From positions 31,496,001 to 31,560,000 of the forward strand of contig NC_086097.1 in assembly GCF_963921235.1 (NCBI RefSeq): a DNA stretch of 64,000 bases. Reading direction: 5' to 3'. Positions 13,306-62,200 of the stretch are shown piece by piece (the stretch's first letter is position 1; every line of letters begins with the position of its first letter). This DNA comes from Mobula hypostoma (lineage: Eukaryota). Under the pieces are notes generated by a model, which saw only the letters and a list, made by a program, of their open reading frames with translations, was not told where the DNA came from and searched no databases. Made by a program: the position numbers and the translations under genes.

Positions 13306-15204
13306 TCATGCCCTCTTGGTGTGGCTGGTGAGCTGGTGGGTGCTCAGGTCCTTCTTGAGCTTGAAGCGGTCACCACACTGCGGGCAGGTATGCATGTGCA
13401 GTTGCATGTGGCGCTCCAGCATGCGGCCATCGGCCTGCACCTGGAAGCAGACTTCGCAGAGGGCCTGCCCAGCGACCAGGTGCGAGGCCAGGTGCCGCAG
13501 GTGCTCCTGCTTGCGGTAACTGCCCTGGCCGCAGCACGGGCACACGTAGCGGGCCTCGCCCCTGTGCATGTCCAGGTGCAGCCGCAGCAGCCGCTCGCGC
13601 AGGAAGCTCTTGCCGCAGAGCGGGCAGGTAAACTCGCGCTCCCGGGTGTGCGTGGCCTGGTGTTCTCGCAGGTGGCAGCGCTGGTAGAAGCCCCGGCCGC
13701 ACAGCTGGCAGACATGCCGGCGGCGGGGCGACGACCCCCCCTCTGGCCCGGGCGGGCTCGGCCCGCATCGCGCCATGTGCTCGGCCCACGGCCGCTCCTC
13801 CTCGAAGGCTAGCGGACAGTGAGGGCAGCGGTAGGTGGCATCAGGGGTCACCCCCACCGTCTCCTCGGCCACCTGATGCTCCTGCATGTGTTCCTCCAGC
13901 TGCCACGAGGCGGGGAAGGCCTGCCCGCACACTGGGCAGGCGCAGGCCTCCTCCGGCGGCTGTTCCAGGCCCAGGCCCTGCTCGCCGGTACCCAGGCATC
14001 GCTCGGCGTGCTCCTGCAGGCGGCCGCCTTTCACCAGGACGCGGCCGCACTTGCCGCAGGCGCACACGCTCTCCCGGTGGTGGGCCACATAGTGCTCAGC
14101 CCGCTCACTCTCGGGCAGCGCCACGCCGCACAGCTCACAGGCCGGGCCCAGCGGGCTGCCACCTGCCCCCGCTCCCTCGTCCTCCTCCTTTAGGCCTCCG
14201 TCCTCCTCCTCGTCCTCCTCCTCCTCATCCGTCCAGCTTCCCGGGTCCCGCTCTGGAGGGGGCGGCTGGCCGAAGTGGCTGTAAGGTGGTGACAAGTCTT
14301 CCTCCAAGCCGGGAGTCAGCTCGCCCTCAGCCGCCACTTGCACAACCGTCAGATCACCAAGGTTGGTGGCCGCTGTGTCCTCGGGCTCTGTTTTGACCTC
14401 AGGCCGTGTGCAGTCTGCCTCTCCCTCGCCTCCTCCTTCCCCGGCTGTTGCCATGGTGTCCAGGGTGAGCGTCCCCCTGCCGCGGGCCGGCGGCGGATCC
14501 CCGGGCTGGGGCAGGGCCCGGCGGCTGTCACAGGTCAGCGAGTGCTCGTCCAGCAGCCGCTCGCAGCTGAAGACAAAACCACAGCGGTCGCAGGTGTAGC
14601 GGCGGCCAAACCGCCGGTGCAGCCGGCCCCCTTTCAGCCCATTGCCCCGGCTCGGCTTGCGGCTGGGCCTGTCGGGGCTGGCGTCGGCCACCGCCGCTGC
14701 CTCTCTCATCCCGTTCAGCTCCGAATCACCAGCCTGATCTTTGGGCCCGGCCCTGGGCACCTTGCCATCACCCGGCAGCAGGCCGTGCATTCGGACGCCG
14801 AACAGCATGGAGCCTCTAGGCGGGCCGAAGGGCGGGGAGGGGGCACTGTCCTCCCGCACCTCCTCCAGACTCCGGGGGACGTAGTAGAGCTGCAGGAAGG
14901 TCATGGCCGAGCGAAGCTCTTCGAAGTCAGAGGGGACGCCGACCAGCCGGCCCAGGTACATGAGTTGCAGAATGAGGTCGAAGCACTCGGCGGTGACGGG
15001 AGCCTGACTCAGGCTGAGGTCGCCCGTCAGCTGCTGCTGACCGATGAACAGCATGCGGAAGTAGGAGCTGCAGGCCGTCAGCACGGCGCGGTGGGCGCGG
15101 AAGTAGATGTCGCCGATGATGATGCAGCAGTCGCAGAGGAAGCCCCACTCCCGCTGGTTGTTCAGCTGCTGAAGGACGTATTCGCTGTGGCTGGGCCGCG
15201 CCAT
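13306..15204 (-). CDS. ZBTB1: Zinc finger and BTB domain-containing protein 1 (632 aa, single coding exon)
   Basis: BTB start MARPSHSEYVLQQLNNQREWGFLCDCC, UBZ-like CPHC..EHMARC, and C-terminal fingers CGRGFYQRCHLREH and CGKSFLRERLLRLH all match ZBTB1. Acceptor ctttgcag| at 15253; the exon starts at 15252. Confidence 0.95.
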   Translation of the reverse strand: MARPSHSEYVLQQLNNQREWGFLCDCCIIIGDIYFRAHRAVLTACSSYFRMLFIGQQQLTGDLSLSQAPVTAECFDLILQLMYLGRLVGVPSDFEELRSAMTFLQLYYVPRSLEEVREDSAPSPPFGPPRGSMLFGVRMHGLLPGDGKVPRAGPKDQAGDSELNGMREAAAVADASPDRPSRKPSRGNGLKGGRLHRRFGRRYTCDRCGFVFSCERLLDEHSLTCDSRRALPQPGDPPPARGRGTLTLDTMATAGEGGGEGEADCTRPEVKTEPEDTAATNLGDLTVVQVAAEGELTPGLEEDLSPPYSHFGQPPPPERDPGSWTDEEEEDEEEDGGLKEEDEGAGAGGSPLGPACELCGVALPESERAEHYVAHHRESVCACGKCGRVLVKGGRLQEHAERCLGTGEQGLGLEQPPEEACACPVCGQAFPASWQLEEHMQEHQVAEETVGVTPDATYRCPHCPLAFEEERPWAEHMARCGPSPPGPEGGSSPRRRHVCQLCGRGFYQRCHLREHQATHTREREFTCPLCGKSFLRERLLRLHLDMHRGEARYVCPCCGQGSYRKQEHLRHLASHLVAGQALCEVCFQVQADGRMLERHMQLHMHTCPQCGDRFKLKKDLSTHQLTSHTKRA

Positions 15205-15409
15205 CCTCGGGACGTGTCCCCCCCACGACCCGCCTCCTCCCGCCAGGGCTTCCTGCAAAGAGCAAAAGCTCAGCGTCAGCTCGAGAGGTATTTTATTTCA
15301 ACATCAGACTTCTTTGACACAGCTACATTGAAACGTACAGTGAAATACGTCATTGTGCACCCACAACTAACACAGCGGTCCGAGGATGTGCTGCAGCCAG
15401 CCCGCTGTT

Positions 15410-48825: not shown

Positions 48826-49551
48826 TGGCCTGATTCTACTCCTATGTCTTATGGTCTTATGAACAATGTTGAGCCACACACAGTAAGTAGTTTGCTATGT
48901 TGTTGTTCTGAGATGTGAACCTCCTGGAGGGCTTTTCTCACTGGAGTGAAGAAGGATGAGAGGTGACTTGACAGAGGTATACAAGATGATAAGAGGCTTA
49001 GATTGAGTGGACAGCCAGAGACTTTTTCCCCAAGGGTGGAAATGGCTAATTCGAAGGGCATAATTTTAAGGTGATTGGAGAAAAGTATAGATGGAGGTAA
49101 GTGTTTTTTTTACACAGAGTGATGAGTGTGTGGAATGCCCTGCCAGGTGTGTAGTAGAGGGGCATTGAACAAATTCTTAGTAGACACATGGATAATAGGA
49201 AATGGAGGGCAACATTGTGGGCTGAAGGGCCTGTACTGTGCTGTAATGGTCTATGAGCCCATTTTGTTGTTTGGGCAAACATAGAACATTACAAGTTCTT
49301 GATATTTATTGCTTAGTTATTATTATTACTTTTATTTTGTATTTGCAAGTTGTTGTCTTTGTGTGTTCTTCCATTGATTCTGCTATGGTTATTGGATTTA
49401 TCGAGTCTGTCTGCAAGAAAATAAATCTCAGGGTTGTATATGGTGACATATATGTACTTTGATAATAAGTTTACCTTGAATTTGAACTTTCAAAGGGCGG
49501 TACCAAATGTTAATTGTGCAGCTTTATTCTCTGCAGGGCTGGGGCGACGTT

Positions 49552-49724
49552 ATGGACGTGGCGAATCACAGTGTGGTCCTGCTGCAGCAGCTGAATGTCC
49601 AGCGGGAGTTTGGCTTCCTGTGTGACTGTACGGTGGCCGTAGGGGACATTCACTTCAAAGCCCATCGAGCTGTGCTGGCTGCATTCTCCAACTACTTCAA
49701 GATGATCTTCATTCATCAGTCCAG
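49552..49724 (+). CDS. ZBTB25: ZBTB25 coding exon 1 (BTB N-terminal half, 173 nt)
   Basis: [57 protein letters not shown]. Acceptor at 49536; donor CAG|GTAAGG, phase 2. Confidence 0.95.
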
Positions 49725-51197: not shown

Positions 51198-52009
51198 CGA
51201 CTACATCAAAGTGCAGCCAATGGACATCCAGCCAGACATCTTCAGCTATTTACTACACCTCATGTACACGGGCAAGGGTCCGAAGCAGCCAGTAGACCCC
51301 AACCGGCTGGAGGAGGGCATCCGATTCCTGCATGCCTACAACTTGGTCCATGACCCGAGCCAAGGGGGACAGGCGTTCACCCAGCACCCCGAGGTGCCGT
51401 CCCTTCAGTCGCCCAACCTCTACGGCATCCAGATCTCGGGCTCACAGAAGCTACCAGTGCCCCCTGGAGGCCAGAGCGGGGTCACCACCCTGAGCGCGGA
51501 GCAGACTGGTCAGACGACCCTGGGAGTGGCCAACATCCCGGAGCACCGGTACGCCCGTCCTCCCATCGGCCAGGAGATGGGAGCAGAGGAGAGCGGCCAG
51601 AGCCTCCCCTCATCATCTGCAGCAGCGTCCAGGGGTCTGCAGGTCCCCGGTCTCAACTTTAAGCGGAGCAAGACCCACAAGCTCTACTCCTGCCACTACT
51701 GTGGGGAGCGGTTCTCTGCCAGGGGCAGCCTGCGGGATCACCTGTACTCGCACGCCAGTAGTGCCGTGCCTGCTGGAGCCCCCACCGAGAGCAGGGCCCT
51801 GGGGGAGGAGGCCGAGGGAGTCGGAGGTTCCCTGTCCCAGGGAGATGAGGCCCTCCCTTCCACCCCTGATCAGCAGGAGGGAAGCGGACTGGACGAACAG
51901 CCTCCCGTCGGTCTGACTGTGACCATTGGAGCCTGCGGGGACGCCGTCGACCCAGGCAGCGGCTTCACCACGGCCAAGAGGAGGAGGTTCACCTGCAGTG
52001 TGTGCGGCC
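51198..52009 (+). CDS. ZBTB25: ZBTB25 coding exon 2 (rest of BTB, linker, C2H2 finger 1, half of finger 2)
   Basis: Acceptor ctgacag|, phase 2. Encodes DYIKVQPMDIQPDIFSYLLHLMYTGKGPKQ..LEEGIRFLHA..NLYGIQIS..CHYCGERF..LRDHLYSH..KRRRFTCSVCG. Donor C|GTGAGT at 52010. Without splicing the frame stops at 52038 (337-aa product). Confidence 0.92.
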
Positions 52010-53089
52010 GTGAGTATCCAGGGCTCCCAGGGGCGTGAGTTGGCAAGGAACTGAGGACCAGGGCCGTCAAGGTGTTAAACCTACTGGCTGAAGTTCCAAC
52101 CCCAACCAGTTCATTTCCAAACTCTAAACACAAGAGATTCAGCAGATGCTGGAGATCTTGAGCAACACACACAAAATGCTGGAGGAACTCAGCGGCGTCT
52201 AAGCGAGGGAGGGGGAAAAACAGTCAATGTTTCAGACCAAGACCCCTCAACAGGACTGGTTCAGAGGGGGGCGGGATCCAGAATAAGAAAGTGAGAAAAG
52301 GGGAAGGAGGCAATGACTTCTTCAACTTCTGGTAAATTCTCCCCCTCCCTCCTCTCTTTTCTATCTCCCTTTTGGTTACCCTGTCTCCTTCATTTCTCCT
52401 GGCTTGTCCGTCATCCCCCTCAAGTTCCCCCTCTTCCTTCCTCTTACAGAGCATTATAACACAGAAATTAATTAGACCTTTGTCCCATCTAGTCCGTACC
52501 AAATTACTAACCTGCCTGTACCCGGACCATAGCGCTCCACGTTTCCCATCCATGTATCTGTTCCAATTTCTCTTACATGTTGAAATTGAACCCGCATCCA
52601 CCACTTCCACTGGCAGCTCGTTCCACACTGTCACCACCATCAGAGTGAAAAGTTCCCCTTAAACATTTCATCTTCCACCCTTTATCCATGACCTCTAATT
52701 CTAGTCTCACGTAACCTCAGTGGAAAAAGCCTGTTTGTATCTCCTCCTTATCATTATGTGCTGTGTTGTATGACGTGGGCGATCATAGTCCCATGATCAT
52801 AATTGTTCTTGGCAAGTTTTCCTACAGAAGTGGTTTGCCATTGTCTTCTTCTGGGCAGTGTCTTTACAAGATGGGTGACCGCTGTCAATATCAATACTCA
52901 GAGATTTTCAGTGGCTGCATAACTAGGTCTTGTGATATGCACCACCTGCTCATATGACCTTCCACCACTTGTTCCCATGGCTTCACATGACCCTAATTGG
53001 GGAACTAACGGTGACCTACCGGCTAGCAGAGAGAAGGAGTACTTTCCACCTTCCTTGGTAGAGACATATCTCCACCTTGCCATCTGTGC

Positions 53090-54300
53090 TTGTATTTACT
53101 CTATCTATGCCTCATAATTTTGTAAACCTCTATCAAATCTCCTCATTATCCTACGCTCCAGAGAATAAAGTCCGAACCTATTCAGCCCTTCCCTATAACT
53201 CAGGTCCTCAAGTCCTGATAACCTCCTTCTAAGTTTTCTCTGTACTCTTTGTCTTATTGATATCTTTCTTGTAGGTAGGTGACCAGAACTGTACACAATA
53301 CTCCAAAGTAGGCTTCAACAACATCTGGTACAAGTTCAAACTAATATTCCAATTCCTGTATTCAATAGTTTGATTTATGAAAGATAAAGTGCGAAAAGAT
53401 CTCTTTACAACCCTAACTACCTGTGATGCCACTTTCAAACAGTTATGTATCTGTATTACCAGTTCCCTCTGTTTTACCACACTCCTTAGTGCCCCACACT
53501 TGTAAAATCTACACTTGTTTGTCCTCCCAAAGTCCAACCCTCACACTTATCAGTATTAAATTTCATCTGCCATTTTTCTAGCTGCAAGCTTTAATAGTCT
53601 TCCTTGTTGTCCACTACATCCCCAATCTTGGTATCATCTGAAAACTTGCTGATTCAGTTTACAACATTATCATCCAGATTGTTTATATTGATGACAAACA
53701 ACAGCCTCAGCAGTACACCACTAGACACAGGCCTCCAGTCAGAGAGCAAACATCAGCTAACACTCTCTGGCTTCTCCCGAAGCCAATGTCTAATCCAGTT
53801 TATTACCTCATCTTGACTGCCAAGTGACTGACTCTTTTTGACCAACCTCCCATGTGGCACTTTGTCAAAGGCCTTGCTAAAGTCCATCTAGATAACATCC
53901 ACTGCCTTGCTTTCATCAGCTTTCCTGGTAACTTTCTTGAAAAACTCCAAAAGACTTGTTAGACCCGAGCTGCCATGCACAAAGCCACGTTAACTACCCT
54001 TATTCAATCCATGTCTATTCAAATACCTAAATACTGGTTCGCTTAGAGTATCTTCCACTAATTTACCTATTACTGATGTTAGAGGCTCACCAGCTTATAA
54101 CTGCCTATCTTTCTTAGAGCCTTTCTTAAATAATAGAACAACATTAGCTATCCTCCAATCCTCTGCGGCTGAGGACATTTTAAATATCTCTGCTAGGGGC
54201 CCTGCAATTTCTGCACCAGCCTCCAACAAGGTTTGAGGGATATACGTTGTCAAGCCCAAGGGATTTATCCACCCTAATTTGTCTCAAAACATCAAACACC
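53090..54300 (-). mobile_element. CR1-like LINE fragment (intronic)
   Basis: LKPTLEYCVQFWSP, plus a decayed MDFSKAFDKVPH region at ~53850-53890. Confidence 0.8.
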
Positions 54301-54724
54301 TCCAGCTTGCAGTGCTACACCTGCCCATTCACCTCCTTCATACCAGGCCCCAAACAGTCCTTTCAGGTGAGGCAACACTTCACCTACAAATCTGCTGGGG
54401 TTGTCTCTTGTATCCGGTGATCCTGATGTGGCCTCTTTGACATTGTTGAAATGTTGTAAATTGGGGATATTTCGTCAAGCATCTCCACTCCATCCACCAA
54501 AAGCAAAACTTCCTGATGGCCAAAATTTTAATTCCAATTCCCATTCTTGTTCTGACATGTCAGTCCATGGGCCCCCTCTTGTGCCTGACTTGCTGTGTTC
54601 CTCTAGCATTTTGTGTGTGTTACCTCCTCTGTAATCTGCATACGGTACATAACCTACTGTTTTGCTTCACTTCTATATACTCTGTCCATCCCTCGAGCAA
54701 GTACAGCGTAGGAGGGATAATATC

Positions 54725-54910
54725 ACTGATTGGGTGGAAGGGTTTGAGGAAAATGCCTTTGATTGGGCGGAAGGGTTTGAGGAAAATGTCTTTGATTGGG
54801 TGTAAGGGTTTGGGGAGAATGTCTCTCACTGGGCAGAAGGGTTTGGGGAGAATGTCTGATTGGGCGGAAGTGCTGGTGAAGGATGTCTCTGATTGGAGAG
54901 GTTTGGGGTA
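54725..54910. repeat. 33-bp minisatellite, 6 units, most containing ATTGG and some GGAAG
   Basis: Unit gattgggYggaagggtttgRggaRaatgYcttt starts at 54728, 54761, 54794, 54827, 54858 and 54891. Confidence 0.9.
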
Positions 54911-55313
54911 ATGGCGTCTCAGATTACCATGGGGATAACTATTCAGTCCTATAATATAATTTGCTTCCATGCTTTTGTAGCTCCTGCCTGATGGGAGAAG
55001 GGAGAAGTGAGAATGACTGGGGTGGATGGGATATTTGATTACGCTGGCTGCTTTACGGAGGCAGGGAGAAGTGTAGAAAGAGTCCCTCCACTCAATGTGA
55101 CCATTCCCTGATGGGGCTCAACCCCATTTCCCTACAATAATTAAACACGGCTGAGGACAGACCAGTGTGGCCTGATTGTTCAACCCACCTCCCCACACTT
55201 CCTCTCTCCCCCTACCATCTTGCACCACACCCCTTCCCTTCTCTGCCCACAAGTCCCCTCTCTCCCCCACTGTCCCCATAAAGCACCCACCCTGATGCCT
55301 CTCTCTCTCCTAG

Positions 55314-57778
55314 ACTCTGCAGACCCTGAGCCCAGCAGCACACCTCCACCTACAGCAGCACCACCTGGAGCCCTGGAGGAGTCACCAGCTGTCGCCCAGC
55401 CCCAGCCCCAGCCCCAGCCCCAGCCCCGGCAGGAGGATTCAGGCCCGAGTGGGAGCCCCGATTCCACCGTTGACCTCGAGAGTGCCTTCCGCGATGTCTT
55501 CGCCAACTATGAGGCGGCGCGTGTCCATGCACACTACAAGTGCGCGCGCACTGGCTGTGAGCGGGCGGCTGTGTCCGCTGAGCCGCGGCGTGGAGACCGC
55601 TTTGTGCATAAGTGGCTGTCGGACCGTGAACTGACTTACTGCGAGCGCACCGGTGTTTACTGGTTGCTCTACGAAGAGGGCCAAGGCATGTTCTGCTACC
55701 TGTGCCGGCGTCACGACACCCAGAACAAGCAGAACAAGACCAAGGTGTTTAACGGGACGCCGGCTGTGCGCTACAAGAAGTCGGCACTGCAGGTGCACGC
55801 TGAGTCACAGCAGCATGCCGCTGCTGTGCACGCTGAGTTGGCGGGCCGCATGACTGAGCGAGAGATGGCCGAACGCGAGCGCCAGGAGGGCACCTCGCTG
55901 CGCGCCCTTTTCCTCGCCGCCTATTGGCTGGCGCGCGAGGGACTACCCACCGCAAAGCTACGCCCTACATTGCGCTTGCTTGGTGAGGCAGGGCTAGTGG
56001 GAGGTGCCGCTACGCATTTTCGGCGAGCCGATACACTTCAGGAAGTGTTTCGCGGATTGGGCCGCGCTGTCCGCCAGCGACTCATCAGCCGTATCCGCCG
56101 TGCCCCCGCCTTCGGCATCCGCTGCGAGCGCGCCGGTCCTGGAGCCGAGGCCTCGCTGCTGGCCTTCGCTCAGTTCATCGAGCCTGGCGTTGAGGTGGCC
56201 AGTGGGCTGCTCTTCACCGAGGCCCCAGGCCCTGGCCGGGGCTGGGACTCACCTGATGAGTTGGCAGCAGTGATCAGCCACACCTTGGGCTGCCTGGAGC
56301 TGCCAGTCTCTCGGCTGGCCTCGCTGGTGACGGATGGCGGCGAGGCGATGCCGACGGTTGTGTCGCGGCTGAGGGAACTGAGCCCGGCCTTGCTGGGACT
56401 GCATTGTGTGAGCCGCAGGCTATTGTTAGCTGCCGCCTCGGGCTGTCTGACCTGCCGGCCCCTGCTGCGGGTTGAGGCCTATCTGCAGCAGCTGTGGGAG
56501 GTGCTGGAGCGTTCGCCTGGCCTGGCCGAAGCCTATCTGAGTGCCCGGCTGGCAGGGGCCTCGGCTGCGCAGCCCAGTGGCCGTCTGAAACCGGCACTGC
56601 TGCGCCGGCTGAGACGGGCCTGCCGCCGCCGCCGACTGTCTCTCGAGGCCTCGGTGGAAGGCGCCTACAATGACTATGCGGCGCTGTTGCGGGCCCTGTC
56701 AGCACTGAGTGAGGCTGAGGCAGCAGCTGTTGGCCTACTGGCCCAGTTGGGCAGCCCACGCTTTGCCGGGGCCCTCTATATCCTGCGGGAGGCTTCAGCT
56801 GCGCTCCTGGGCCTGTCGCGGGCCTGGCGCCGGGGTGGCCTCCACCCACCCGCCCTGGAGTCTCTCCTACGACAGGCACTGCAAAGGCTGGAGGAGGTTG
56901 CTTCCTCCCGGGCCGCGCTAACTCGCCTGCGAGTGGATTTGGAGCCCGGCGGCCGCTTGTCCTGCTGTGCGCTGCCGGGGCTGGGCGCTGGGGACGAGGC
57001 TGAGCTGCGTGGCCTGTTGGAGACCTACACTGCCCGGCTGGTGACTGACTTACGCCGCCGCTTTGAAGCGTCTGCTCCGCTGCTAGCCGCCGTCTCCATT
57101 TTTAACCCCCTTTTGGTGCCTGATCCGGGTTCCTCCGGCTTTGCTGCTCATGGACAGGCTGAGGTCGGGGCCTTAGCCGCTCATTTCCACCCCGGAGACC
57201 TGGCTGCCGAGGCCCGGTTGCAGGCTGAGTGGGCTCGACTCAAGCTGGAGCTGCCGGGTTGGAAGTTTGGTGTTGCAGCCTTGTCGCTGGGCGAATCTTC
57301 AGCGACTGAGTGCTGTCTGCGCCACCTCTTGGGCCTCGGCACATACCCGGCCCTGACGCAGTTTGCCGAGGTGGCACTTTCAGCCCCCGTGGCCCCGGCC
57401 CGCTCTGACCGGGCCTTTGCTGCCCTGCGGAGGCTGGAGACGCGACTGCGGGGTGGGCGCTGTGAAGACACCGGCCTGCTTGACAGCCTGCTACAGATCT
57501 CGGTAAACGGACCCGAGCTGGGTACGGCCGACTGCACACAGCTGATCCAGGAGGCGGCCCTCGCCTTCCTACAGCAGAGGTGCCAGGGCACAGTGGTCCC
57601 AGCCCACCAGAAACCCCCGCTGGCATCCTTCAAGACTGAGGAGGCGGCTGAGGCCTGCTGTTCAGAGGGCTCGGAGCAGGAGCTGGAACAGCTGCAGCAG
57701 GAGCTGGATCAGACAGTGGGCGCCCTACAGCTCCAAGCCGACAACGAGAGTGACTCAGAGGACAGCCTCTGCGACTAA
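55314..57778 (+). CDS. Domesticated hAT transposase-derived exon (ZNF862/C17orf113-like: TTF/BED-type zinc finger, RNase H-like body, hAT dimerisation domain); predicted terminal exon of ZBTB25
   Basis: Uninterrupted ~820 codons. W..W..GMFCYLC..H(AESQQ)H finger; hAT-like motifs LVTDGG, LHCVSRRL, SIFNP, PVAPARSDRAF and LLQISVNGP. Branch site ctgAt (55295), pyrimidine tract and tag| acceptor in phase 1. Confidence 0.85.
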
Positions 57779-58487
57779 GCCCTGGGTCTTCCTGCAAACG
57801 CCCAGCCAGAGCTGACGCCAAGGTAGAAGTGCCTGACTCTGGCCATTCCCTTGGGCTGGCCCCTTCTCCTCGCCCATGCCCTTGGGCATGACAACCAAGG
57901 CAGATATGTGAGTTCATGGGAGGGTCACAGAGCTGTCAGGGTTTGGGCATAAGTAGGCAGGTCTGTCCCCATGCTGAATGCTAACAGGGTGGAACTTTAG
58001 AAGTCTGGAAGTCGATGGGGCAGGTTCAGGATTGTCTCAATGTAGACCCCAGAATTTTGGATGCTAAAATCCAGAGCATCACACCAGAATCTAGAGAACC
58101 TTGATGGGTTGGGCAGCATCCATGGAGGGAAATGGACCGTGTGTCTTTGGTCGCAGCTCTTCATCTGGTGAGAAGTGTCATCCATTTCCTTCCCTCAGTG
58201 CTGCCTGACCCACTGGGTCTGTCCAGCATCTTGTGTTGTTGGGAATGTGTTCACCTTCCCGTCAATGGGGCTCTCTTTTTGACCACACCTTTGCTACCGG
58301 CCATTCTCCCTGAGGGCCAGTGTATTGGGGTGGTGTGGCAGGCTGGAAGAGAGATGGTCTTGCTCAGGGTGGAATATAGCTTCCAGCTATTGCAGAATAC
58401 CCAAAACACTTCCACCACAAGTGTGCTTTGAGTAGATTTATTTCTTTTTAACTGCAGTAGTTTTTTCACTTGTATTTTAAAAGTAAA

Positions 58488-58607: not shown

Positions 58608-59278
58608 TTAAGACCATAAGATATAGGAACAGAAGTAGGCCATTTGGCCCATCGAGTCTGCATTACCATTCAAACATGGGCTGATCCAATTCTTCCAGTC
58701 ATCCCACTCCCCTGCTTTCACCTCATACCCTTTGCTGCCCTGGCTAATCAAGAACCTATCTATCTCTGCCTTAAATACACCCAATGACTTGGCCTCCACA
58801 GCCGCTCGTGGCAACAAATTCCACAGATTTACCACCCTCTGACTAAAGTAATTTCTCTGCATCTCAGTTCTAAAAGGACGTCCTTCAATCATGCCCTCTT
58901 GTCCTTGAATCCCCTAGCATGGGAAATAACTTTGCCATATCTAATCTGTTCAGGTCTTTTAACATTCGGAATGTTTCTATGAGATCCCCCCTCATTCTCC
59001 TGAACTCCAGGGAATACAGCCCAAGAGCTGCCAGAGGTTCCTCATACGGTAACCCTTTCATTCCTGGAATCATTCTCGTGAATCTTCTCTGAACCCTCTC
59101 CAATGTCAGTATATCCTTTCTGAGATAAGGAGCCCAAAACTGCACACAATACTCCTTGTGGTCTCACGAGTGTCTTATAGAGCCTCAACATTATATCCCT
59201 GCTGTTATATTCTATACCACTGGAAATGAATGCCAACATTGCATTCGCCTTCTTCACAACCGACTCAACCTGGAGGTT
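58608..59278 (-). mobile_element. CR1-like LINE 3' end, relatively well preserved
   Basis: KKANAMLAFIS..ERVQRRFTRMIPG..FSQRVVNLWNLLP and an intact 3' tail. Further CR1 pieces at ~59990-60480 and 60915-62160. Confidence 0.9.
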
Positions 59279-62200
59279 GAGTTACAAAAAGCTGCAGGTG
59301 CTGGAATCTGGAGAGAGAACTCAGCATCTGTGTAGGGAAGAGAATGTTTCTGGTTTAGACCCTGAATCACCTTTGTTGGGACCTGGCTGGCTTATTTTGT
59401 CTGTTGTGTCTGCTCTCCAATTTAGTGAGATCATAGCTAATCCTTTAATGCCATCTTCCCTTTCTGTACGACTCTGAAATCTTTTATTTCTCTCCACACC
59501 TGTGAATGTGTGAGGGGCATGTAGACAGATACATGAACGGGCAGGAACCGGAGCACACCTGGAGTTTCAGTTGTCATCGTGACTGGCACAGATACTGTGT
59601 ACCAGCGGGCTGTTTGTGAATACCCTCAGACTTGGCCTTCGCCCTCTTTTGTGGACAATTATGGTGGATCGCCAACCTTTAAGGAATTTCTCCTGATCTG
59701 AATTTTTAGCTGTTTGATCCCTGGGTTTTAGATGTGTCAGTGTGGGGACACATCCCTATATGTATCTTGTCAAATCACGAGTGCATTTTGTCTGCTTCAG
59801 TGAGATCACTCTCGTTCTGACTTTCACCGAGTAGACTCAGCTTTACCTGTTAGGATAACCCCTCCATTTCAGCTGCATCCACTGCAGGTACATCTGTCCT
59901 TACACAAAGAGACCAAACTCGGTGCAGTCAACCGGTAGAGTGCCTTTGGCCTGGGTTTCAGCCTGACTTTGCCCTGGGCCTCTAATTTCCTTCCATATCA
60001 CATTTGGAATATTATCAGCAGTTTTAGAACCCATTTGTAAGGAATAGTGTGCTGACCTTGGAGAGGATCCTGAGGAGTTCATGAGAATTATTCCAGAAAT
60101 GAAAGAGTTAATGTACAAGGACTATTTGATGGCTCTGGGTCTGTACTCGCTGGAGTTCAGAAGAATGAGTGGGGATCTCCTTGAAACCTGCTGAATATTA
60201 AAAGGCGTAGAAAGAGTGGAGGTGCAGAGGATGTTACCAACAGTGGGAGAGTCTAGGACTAGAGGGCACAGCCTCAGAAAAGAAGGACGACCCTTTAGAA
60301 CAGAAATGAGGAGGAATCATTTAGCCTGAGGGTGATGAATTTGTGGAATTCATTGCCACGGATGGCTGTGCAAACCAAGCCACTGGGTATATTTAAATGA
60401 GAGATTGATAGGTTTTTGATTAGTCAGACGTTATGGGGAAATGAAATTGAGATGGAAAATAAATGAGGCATGAAGTAATAAACTGGATTCAGCATTTTCC
60501 AACCTCCCATGAGGAACTTCGTCAAAGGCCTTGCTAAAATCCCCGTAGCCAATGTTCACTGCCCTAACTTCATCAACCTTCCTGGTACCTACCCTCCGCA
60601 AATAATTATACAAGGTTGGTTAGACGTGACCTACCATGCACAAAGTCATGTTGACAATCCTTAATCAAGTCCTCTTTATCCTTGTACGTGCAATATTTTA
60701 TCCACAACTGATAGCAGGCTCACTGGACTATAACACACTGACATATTCGTAGAGCTTTCTTGAACAATGGAACACCAGTAGCTATCCTCCAGACTGCTGG
60801 CGCCTCGCCCATACTGAAGAACTTTTAAATATCTCTGCAATTTCTGCACTCGCCCACCAAGGAGTCCCCTGCCAACCCCTGGGAATTTATCCACCCTAAT
60901 TTGCCTCAAGACTCTTTAAGAAGGGAGGAGGCAGAAGAAAGGAAGTTATAGGCTAGTTATCCTGACATCAGTTTTAGATGTTCAAGTCCATTATTAAGTA
61001 TGAGGTTTCGGGGTATTTGAGGCACATGATGAAGGGAAAAGCTTGTCTGACAAATCTGTTAGAATTATTTAAGGAAATAACAGACAGGATAGACAACGGA
61101 TATTGTTGACTTGGATTTTCAAAGGCCTTTGACAAGGTGCTGCACATGAGACTTATTAAATAAGAACCTGGTATTATAGGAAATGGTTATATGAACCTGG
61201 TATTATAGAAAAGATACTAGCATGGATAGAAGATTGGCTGACTGGCAAGAGGCAAAAAGTGGGAATAAAGGGAGCCTTTTATGGTTGGCTGCTGGTGACT
61301 AGTGATGTTCTGCGGGGGTTAGTATTGCGACTGATAATTTTCATGTCAATAATTTGGATGATGGATTTGCTGGCTTTGTGACCAAGTTTCCAGATGATAC
61401 GAAGATAGGTGGAGAAGCTGGGAGTCTGCAGAAGGATTTAGTTTGGGAGAATGGTTAAAGAAATGGCAGTTTTGGGCCTTGCATCTAGAAAAGATGTGCT
61501 GACATTGGGGAGAGAGAGAGTCCAGAGGAGATTCACAAGAATGATCCTGAGAATCTGGGAATGATGGGGTTAACACAGGAAAAGGCTCTGGGCCTGTACT
61601 TGCTGGAGTTTGGAAGAATCAGGGGGAATCTAATTGAAAATGATTGAATATTGAAACACCTAGATAGAGTGGAGGTGGAGAGGATGTTTCCTATAGTGGG
61701 GGGAGTCTAGGGCCAGAAGGCACAGCTTCAGAATAGAAGGACATCCCTTTAGAACGGAAATGAAGACTTTCTTTAGCCAGTTTAGTGAATCTATAGAATG
61801 CATTGCTGCAGACAGCTGTGGAGGCCAAGTCATAGGGTTTATTGGCGTTGCATGGTAGCATAGTGGTTAGCACGACGGTTTACAGTACCAGTGAGTCAGA
61901 TTCACTTCCCGCCCTTGTCTGGAAGGAGTTTGTAAGTTCTCCCCGTGACTGCATGTGTTTCCTCCCGCATTGTTGATTGGTCATTGTAAGTTGTCCTGTA
62001 ATTAGGCAAGGGTTAAATCGGAGCAGCTCGAAAGGCTGGAAAGGCTACTCCATTCTGTAAAAAAATATTTAAAGTGGAGGTTTGATAGGTTCCTGATTAG
62101 TAAAGGGGTCAAAGGTTACAGAGAGACGGCTGGAGAATGAGGTTGAGGGAATAATGGAATGGCGGGACAGATTGTCACTGGATCTAACTTCTTGGACTCA

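Follow-up and report, generated by a model that had tools for sequence, protein, structure and literature searches.

Transposase capture is a known route to new transcription factors, and host-transposase fusions are the subject of a dedicated study (Cosby et al., 'Recurrent evolution of vertebrate transcription factors by transposase capture', bioRxiv 10.1101/2020.05.07.082677). The catalogued cases are mostly from tetrapods, younger than the fusion described below and confined to the DNA-binding domain of the transposase. For the hAT superfamily, the Hermes transposase (PDB 2BW3, 4D1Q, 6DWW and 8EDG) provides the reference, and five of its residues (D180, D248, R318, W319 and E572) have been called essential (PMC6027215, citing Hickman et al.). 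Here, we analyzed a stretch of 64,000 nucleotides (nt) from Mobula hypostoma (assembly GCF_963921235.1, contig NC_086097.1, positions 31,496,001 to 31,560,000 of the forward strand; hereafter the window, numbered from its first letter), in which the orthologue of the BTB zinc-finger gene ZBTB25 ends in a coding exon derived from an hAT transposase. This exon probably represents a captured transposase whose catalytic core is dead and whose zinc fingers have been kept, within a protein that acts as a BTB regulator. Coordinates of all features are collected in Table 1.

The open reading frame (ORF) at 55314-57778 is an hAT transposase derivative. It appears in the ORF listing as an 852-codon frame (55220-57778, forward strand), and its true beginning is a splice acceptor. 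The Pfam domain zf-C17orf113 (PF25431) matched the exon with E = 7e-10 (39 bits, above the cut-off of 29.5). A profile built from the exons of 14 cartilaginous fish recovered 4114 proteins at E <= 0.001, and the few named relatives were from amphioxus ('ZNF862-like' and 'C17orf113-like') and a bivalve. All 10 full-length relatives that were scanned contained zf-C17orf113 and 7 of them DUF4371, some of these matches lying below the Pfam cut-offs; all 10 also matched the domain Dimer_Tnp_hAT (PF05699) at E <= 0.0014, 9 of them above its cut-off of 21.4 bits (P0107 reached 18.8). Many full-length relatives with all catalytic residues were located on contigs of 3-6 kb (P0016-P0049), one cluster including a protein of the bivalve Solemya velum, and the source family seems to be still active in marine invertebrates.

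Both a direct phmmer search with the ORF and a search with the 14-orthologue profile against the PDB gave nothing useful; with intact relatives included in the profile, the best solved structure was the Hermes transposase (E = 1e-7). An AlphaFold model from orthologues alone was dropped (predicted local distance difference test, pLDDT, 55), and the model used was based on an alignment of 59 sequences (pLDDT 90.2; predicted template modelling score 0.81). The top 12 Foldseek matches in the PDB were all Hermes (prob 1.00, E about 1e-6). VIA-align to Hermes gave Z values of 14.9-16.4 over ~400 residues, the best being Z = 16.4 over 403 residues with an rmsd of 6.1 (model 175-681 against Hermes 135-609), and, like Hermes, the model has an RNase H-like core into which an all-helical domain is inserted. 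Among reviewed proteins, the best structural matches were human ZNF862 and C17orf113, ahead of further domesticated hAT proteins.

The N-terminal part of the protein identifies the host gene as the ZBTB25 orthologue: its first 353 residues share ~45% identity with ZBTB25 from ray-finned fish and tetrapods, and a search with the N-terminal BTB part returned 541 matches at E <= 1e-20, the top named ones being ZBTB25. The closest database protein is Hypanus sabinus LOC132388354 (1150 aa, 94% identical). Two further exons were located by tblastn of this protein, and their boundaries were fixed by reading the DNA; for coding exon 1, the best outside matches were ZBTB25 proteins. Exon 2 ends at the donor C|gtgagt (52009/52010), and the terminal exon opens with AC at 55314 behind the acceptor ctcctag|AC, a pyrimidine tract with its AG ending at 55313. 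The C of exon 2 and this AC form a His codon, in agreement with the closest database protein (…CSVCGHSADPEP…), and the coding sequence amounts to 173 + 812 + 2462 nt, or 1149 codons. The first C2H2 finger of the ray protein is complete and the second has only its CxxC ahead of the splice. Neither the second half of finger 2 nor the canonical ZBTB25 tail could be found on the forward strand of the window, and they may lie beyond 64000. The acceptor (pyrimidine tract plus AG, phase 1) occupies an identical position in rays, two skates and whale shark. The donor of cartilaginous fish lies within finger 2 (…CSVCG|H…), whereas in coelacanth and lungfish finger 2 is complete before the splice (…HMYTHT|D…).

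Splicing of the two parts was also seen in transcript data, namely contigs of four small public runs, apparently from the same species, mapped to 51850-57800. Each run gave one contig of 4.1-4.2 kb that joined 52009 directly to 55314, with the 3304-nt GT..AG intron removed, and repeat-like scraps were the only coverage of the intron itself. In another batoid, the entire fused ORF of 1178 aa lies unbroken on one 3605-nt contig. The run type was guessed to be RNA, and the splicing argument relies on the exact removal of the intron. Since the intron is exactly removed and the fused ORF is unbroken in another batoid, the fused mRNA is real. All four runs had C at 56398 where the window has A, a synonymous difference at the third position of Gly361.

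To compare catalytic motifs, residues of the terminal exon were numbered from S1 = 55316 and placed in a table of 59 sequences, 43 of them intact transposon-like relatives. The register came from the profile-to-Hermes alignment, in which '…vDevtD…' fell on D180, '…vtDGa…' on D248, '…trWls…' on R318/W319 and '…pERg…' on E572; the D180 and D248 registers derive from an individually non-significant segment, though one that falls exactly on the known residues. Intact relatives had D, D and R-W in 43 of 43 cases and the Glu of the last column in all 38 that cover it, with E-R in all covering sequences; where CxxH was covered, the His was present in all and the Cys in all but one.

The preliminary description of this locus, made by eye, had read FGIRCERAG (from 56111) as a degraded first Asp motif, TDGG (56330) as a kept second Asp, HCVSRRL (56402) as CxxH without its His, RRRLS (~56626) as a motif without its Trp and SDRAF (57404) as what stands at the catalytic Glu, and the alignment agrees with it in every position. 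The first catalytic Asp is replaced by Glu (E271, GAG at 56126-56128) in the column that is Asp in 43 of 43 relatives, and the second is kept (D340, 56333-56335). CxxH has become CxxR (56405-56416), with C364 retained and the His replaced by R367 (56414-56416). Within CRRRRLS, R-W has become R-R (R439-R440, 56630-56635), the Trp being replaced by R440 (56633-56635), and the catalytic Glu has become Asp (D698, 57407-57409), followed by R699. Of the five Hermes residues called essential, three have thus been exchanged in the window, as has the His of CxxH, and further family-invariant residues are gone as well (the second Asp of DExTD, Q505, S702 and K708). The preliminary description had also proposed a Hermes alignment and a superposition of an AlphaFold model: the fold is the same, yet neither CxxH nor the D-D-E triad of an active hAT transposase is intact, E271, D340 and D698 standing in place of the latter. 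The ray core is no longer a transposase, and, judged from its sequence, the ray exon has probably lost the ability to cut.

The zinc fingers show a different picture. The zf-C17orf113 ligands C127 (55694-55696), C130 (55703-55705), H161 (55796-55798) and H167 (55814-55816) are present in every relative covering them and are intact in the ray exon, as had been described. The extra HAHYKC..C cluster that had been pointed out upstream also exists (H71, C76, C81 and H98); it is a probable additional zinc knuckle, found in 20-23 of the relatives covering it. The closest transposase relatives have it too, and it is an ancestral trait of this hAT subfamily and no novelty of the host gene. Among 69 columns with at least 85% identity in the relatives, the window keeps 8 of 8 in the finger region, 22 of 28 in the insertion domain, 9 of 16 in the N-terminal core and 8 of 14 in the C-terminal core. 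Finger and insertion domain together keep 30 of 36 against 17 of 30 for the core parts (Fisher p = 0.028), and decay is concentrated in the catalytic core beyond chance.

Selection was measured as the ratio of non-synonymous to synonymous substitution rates (dN/dS, or omega) by pairwise Nei-Gojobori comparison of five exons (the window, two skates, another batoid and whale shark). The ratio was 0.16-0.46 for the whole terminal exon, lowest in the finger region (0.03-0.35) and highest in the N-terminal core (0.21-0.64); these values are rough, as the sequences are GC-rich and dS is partly saturated in deep pairs, and their direction is consistent. All domains had dN/dS below 1. The per-domain comparison suggested in the preliminary description thus gave its lowest values in the fingers, and the claim that the exon has been retained is in line both with these ratios and with the spliced mRNA of the four runs.

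It could be argued that the transposase-derived part acts chiefly through protein contacts, as a SUMO E3-like protein or an adaptor comparable to ZBED1 and KIAA1586, with DNA binding secondary. Its structural neighbours do include ZBED1 and the hAT-derived E3 SUMO-protein ligase KIAA1586, and the insertion domain keeps most of its conserved columns (22/28). However, these names are whole-protein annotations and no evidence for the ray protein, and the tightest constraint is found on the zinc fingers (omega 0.03-0.35, 8 of 8 columns), which indicates nucleic-acid binding. A chiefly adaptor-like role would seem unlikely.

Fusion of this exon to ZBTB25 is shared by rays, sharks, skates, sawfish, chimaera, coelacanth and lungfish. 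Maximum-likelihood analysis grouped the fused exons of 16 species into one clade with a Shimodaira-Hasegawa-like approximate likelihood-ratio test (SH-aLRT) value of 100, in which lobe-finned fish, chimaera and elasmobranchs appeared in the expected order; the nearest sequences outside this clade were intact elements on contigs, probably of invertebrates. Batoids were placed beside the sawshark, inside sharks, which we take to be a composition artefact because deviant amino-acid composition was flagged for many rows, batoids among them. As the clade is single and has full support, the simplest reading is that the capture took place once, ahead of the divergence between cartilaginous and bony vertebrates. 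The old domestication proposed in the preliminary description is therefore supported by a ZBTB25-spliced exon whose clade follows the species tree. No tetrapod or ray-finned fish counterpart was observed among the top profile hits or the ZBTB25 proteins found, in protein searches without genome scans, which suggests that the fused exon may have been lost in both groups.

For coelacanth and lungfish, the database contains two forms, a long one that includes the fusion (1196-1204 aa) and the short canonical ZBTB25 (436-443 aa). Protein searches in cartilaginous fish yielded no canonical short form, only a truncated Narcine fusion and an intron read-through fragment. The former, a ZBTB25-like protein of Narcine bancroftii (P0188, 460 aa), enters the linker of the transposase exon, where a PEDPAAAAPPAG-like unit is tandemly expanded, and then stops; it is either a mis-annotation or a sign of exon loss in the electric ray lineage. 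In the window, the linker that opens the terminal exon contains a coding CCCCAG microsatellite (55387-55437) specifying (Gln-Pro)n, whose length varies among species and at which reads appear to be cut.

Alternatively, the exon could be a plain transposon copy, decaying or active until recently, that happens to adjoin ZBTB25. Its full transposase length and domain order would fit such a copy. However, the intact 821-codon frame occupies the same place in the spliced gene of rays, skates and whale shark, the orthologue clade follows the species tree with omega below 1, and the mRNA is spliced. In addition, the neighbourhood does not look like that of a mobile element. Among 136 inverted pairs in 8.5 kb, none that flanks the exon has a target duplication, and the absence of terminal inverted repeats (TIRs) and target site duplications (TSDs) noted earlier was thus confirmed. 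The only pair flanking the exon, one of 17 nt at 54246 / 57879, was rejected as chance since the flanking 8-mers differ, with no target duplication and no hAT-like end. No second copy of the exon was found within the window. The observation that the exon is as GC-rich as neighbouring host genes also held: GC content was 0.66 in the terminal exon, 0.64 in exon 2, 0.69 in the neighbouring BTB gene and 0.45 in the intron, and GC content at third codon positions (GC3) was 0.72 in the terminal exon against 0.78 in the host exon. On this evidence, a transposon that simply lies next to ZBTB25 is extremely improbable.

The catalytic residues had different fates in different lineages. Sharks keep D, D and E, as well as CxxH except in the sawshark (P0009), and chimaera keeps D, D and CxxH, its protein being truncated before the Glu. 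Stingrays and sawfish have E, D and D and have lost the His of CxxH, whereas skates have E, E and E and have lost both Cys and His. In coelacanth and lungfish, Gly occupies the first position, and the CxxH His and the Glu are lost. Of 16 conserved columns in the N-terminal core, sharks keep 14, the window 9 and skates 5. The sole hallmark lost in every orthologue is the Trp, which is Arg in cartilaginous fish and Gln in lobe-finned fish; sharks too are without the second Asp of DExTD, Q505, S702 and K708. Because sharks keep the triad and mostly CxxH, the loss of catalysis would not be shared ancestrally, the Trp excepted, and decay is lineage-specific, in rays and in lobe-finned fish. Transposition was probably lost early, together with the Trp, as this residue is gone in all orthologues. 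The acidic site appears to have survived long thereafter and to have been dismantled separately in several lineages.

Several points weigh against a dead core retained for binding. With omega at 0.21-0.64, purifying selection still acts on the core, and the dN/dS estimates that set the fingers apart are rough. All three triad positions of the window are still acidic (E, D and D), and sharks retain their catalytic residues as listed above. The match of the window to Dimer_Tnp_hAT is weak (E = 0.028, 14.7 bits against the cut-off of 21.4). Ancestry, splicing, expression, conservation and residue states of the exon are established; DNA binding and oligomerisation as the purpose of its retention, and the loss of cutting, are what we infer from them. 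One could imagine that the core is still a nuclease, in which the E-D-D triad binds metal and nicks or cuts at sites chosen by the fingers without transposing. The conservative nature of the triad changes, the selection on the core and the D, D, E (and, apart from the sawshark, CxxH) of the sampled shark lineages would agree with such an activity. On the other hand, Asp/Glu swaps in the triad of DDE enzymes usually abolish activity, and the Trp, the CxxH His, the second Asp of DExTD, Q505, S702 and K708 are gone. The second Asp is altered in skates, too, and the first is Gly in coelacanth and lungfish, so the active site drifts differently in each lineage. A ray core that still cuts DNA thus appears quite improbable.

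A related idea is that the hAT core fused to ZBTB25 in sharks, and perhaps in chimaera, is a working metal-dependent nuclease, which would have been switched off separately in rays, in skates and in lobe-finned fish. It is based on the residues retained since long before the divergence of sharks and rays, and we regard it as a long shot. If true, there would be a BTB-tethered DNA-cutting enzyme, and the ray gene would show what a domesticated transposase looks like after it has been disabled, in what amounts to a natural experiment.

With a dead core and conserved fingers as the favored explanation, the following course of events can be proposed. An hAT transposon of the zf-C17orf113/ZNF862-like subfamily would have inserted downstream of ZBTB25 in the jawed-vertebrate ancestor, and its transposase ORF would have been captured by ZBTB25 through splicing. 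The product of 1149 aa combines the BTB domain and one C2H2 finger with the transposase zinc fingers and an RNase H-like core containing the helical insertion domain. Such a fusion protein might act as a BTB transcription regulator, in which DNA recognition would depend mostly on the transposase fingers, because the splice halves the second host finger, and the dead core might serve as a folded scaffold or an oligomerisation module.

Table 1. Features of the ZBTB25-transposase fusion gene in the window (UTR, untranslated region)
Feature	Position	Strand	Remarks
Coding exon 1 of the ZBTB25 orthologue	49537..49724	+	ATG at 49552; start of BTB domain; donor AG|gtaagg
Coding exon 2	51198..52009	+	remaining BTB, linker, one full C2H2 finger, CxxC half of finger 2
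Intron, 3304 nt	52010..55313	+	GT..AG ends; repeat-filled; GC 0.45
Terminal coding exon, hAT transposase-derived	55314..57778	+	821 codons including the split His codon; stop 57776-57778
Upstream H71-x4-C76-x4-C81-x16-H98 cluster	55526..55609	+	invariant in 16/16 vertebrate orthologues
zf-C17orf113 finger	55661..55843	+	PF25431
RNase H-like core, N-terminal part	56102..56440	+	holds E271, D340 and C364..R367
All-helical insertion domain	56441..57385	+	R439-R440 at the R-W place; helical in the model
Core, C-terminal part (Pfam 'hAT dimerisation' region)	57386..57595	+	holds D698; profile aligns to Hermes ...SAASERTFS...
Acidic, Ser-rich conserved tail (…SEQELEQLQQELD…SDSEDSLCD)	57596..57775	+	orthologue alignment; dN/dS 0.12-0.54
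3' UTR	57779..58457	+	end approximate; from transcript contigs extending ~657 nt past 57800

Other observations concern the surroundings of the exon. In the transcript runs, contig depths added up to thousands over two stretches of the intron (52049-52247 and 54238-54436), which resemble copies of abundant repeats that are transcribed; the intron also contains a 30-nt inverted pair (93%) at 52164-52193 / 54592-54621. Downstream of the gene, and in part inside the inferred 3' UTR, there is a large imperfect inverted repeat (58740-59082 / 60078-60427) with arms of 191, 108 and 41 nt, 73-80% complementarity and a distance of about 1-1.5 kb, which may be a foldback element or a pair of repeat copies in opposite orientation. 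Another BTB zinc-finger gene is located at 13309-15297 on the reverse strand, in divergent orientation to ZBTB25. It consists of one 663-codon frame (GC 0.69, GC3 0.84) with several C2H2 fingers, and its BTB part is ~30-39% identical to ZBTB25. In mammals, ZBTB1 adjoins ZBTB25, and this gene is possibly a ZBTB1-like neighbour.

Taken as a whole, the locus is of an ordinary kind, a domesticated transposase fused to a host gene, and it is unusually old: a nearly complete hAT transposase has formed the final exon of a BTB zinc-finger gene from a time that predates the cartilaginous/bony split. As the active site has decayed by different routes in different lineages with the fingers untouched, a dated multi-lineage series becomes available, which allows one to ask which parts of a transposase a host needs and what the long isoform of ZBTB25 does. 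Automatic annotation already includes the fused proteins. None of the papers searched describes the ZBTB25-transposase fusion itself, and C17orf113 turned up in a single unrelated one; in the text searched, Cosby et al. (10.1101/2020.05.07.082677) mention neither BTB/ZBTB nor sharks or coelacanth.

Compared with Hermes, the ray exon has the same fold and domain order, but it carries E, D, R/R and D at the essential positions and no CxxH His, has no TIRs or TSD, begins with another N-terminal finger and is spliced to a host gene. Human ZNF862 and C17orf113 share with it the zf-C17orf113 finger followed by the RNase H-like core and the insertion domain, and match it structurally with E = 1e-19 and 1e-17, respectively (template modelling score up to 0.61 over about 650-730 columns), although sequence identity is only 18-19%. 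The host parts differ: ZNF862 has KRAB domains and C17orf113 stands alone, whereas the ray protein has the BTB domain and C2H2 finger of ZBTB25. Canonical vertebrate ZBTB25 is ~435 aa in length with a BTB domain and two C2H2 fingers, of which the ray protein has one complete. Finally, as in the fusions described by Cosby et al., a transposase ORF is spliced as an exon to transcription-factor domains and the DNA-binding domain of the transposase is retained; unlike those, the ray gene keeps nearly the whole transposase, and its fusion is far older than the KRABINER-type cases.

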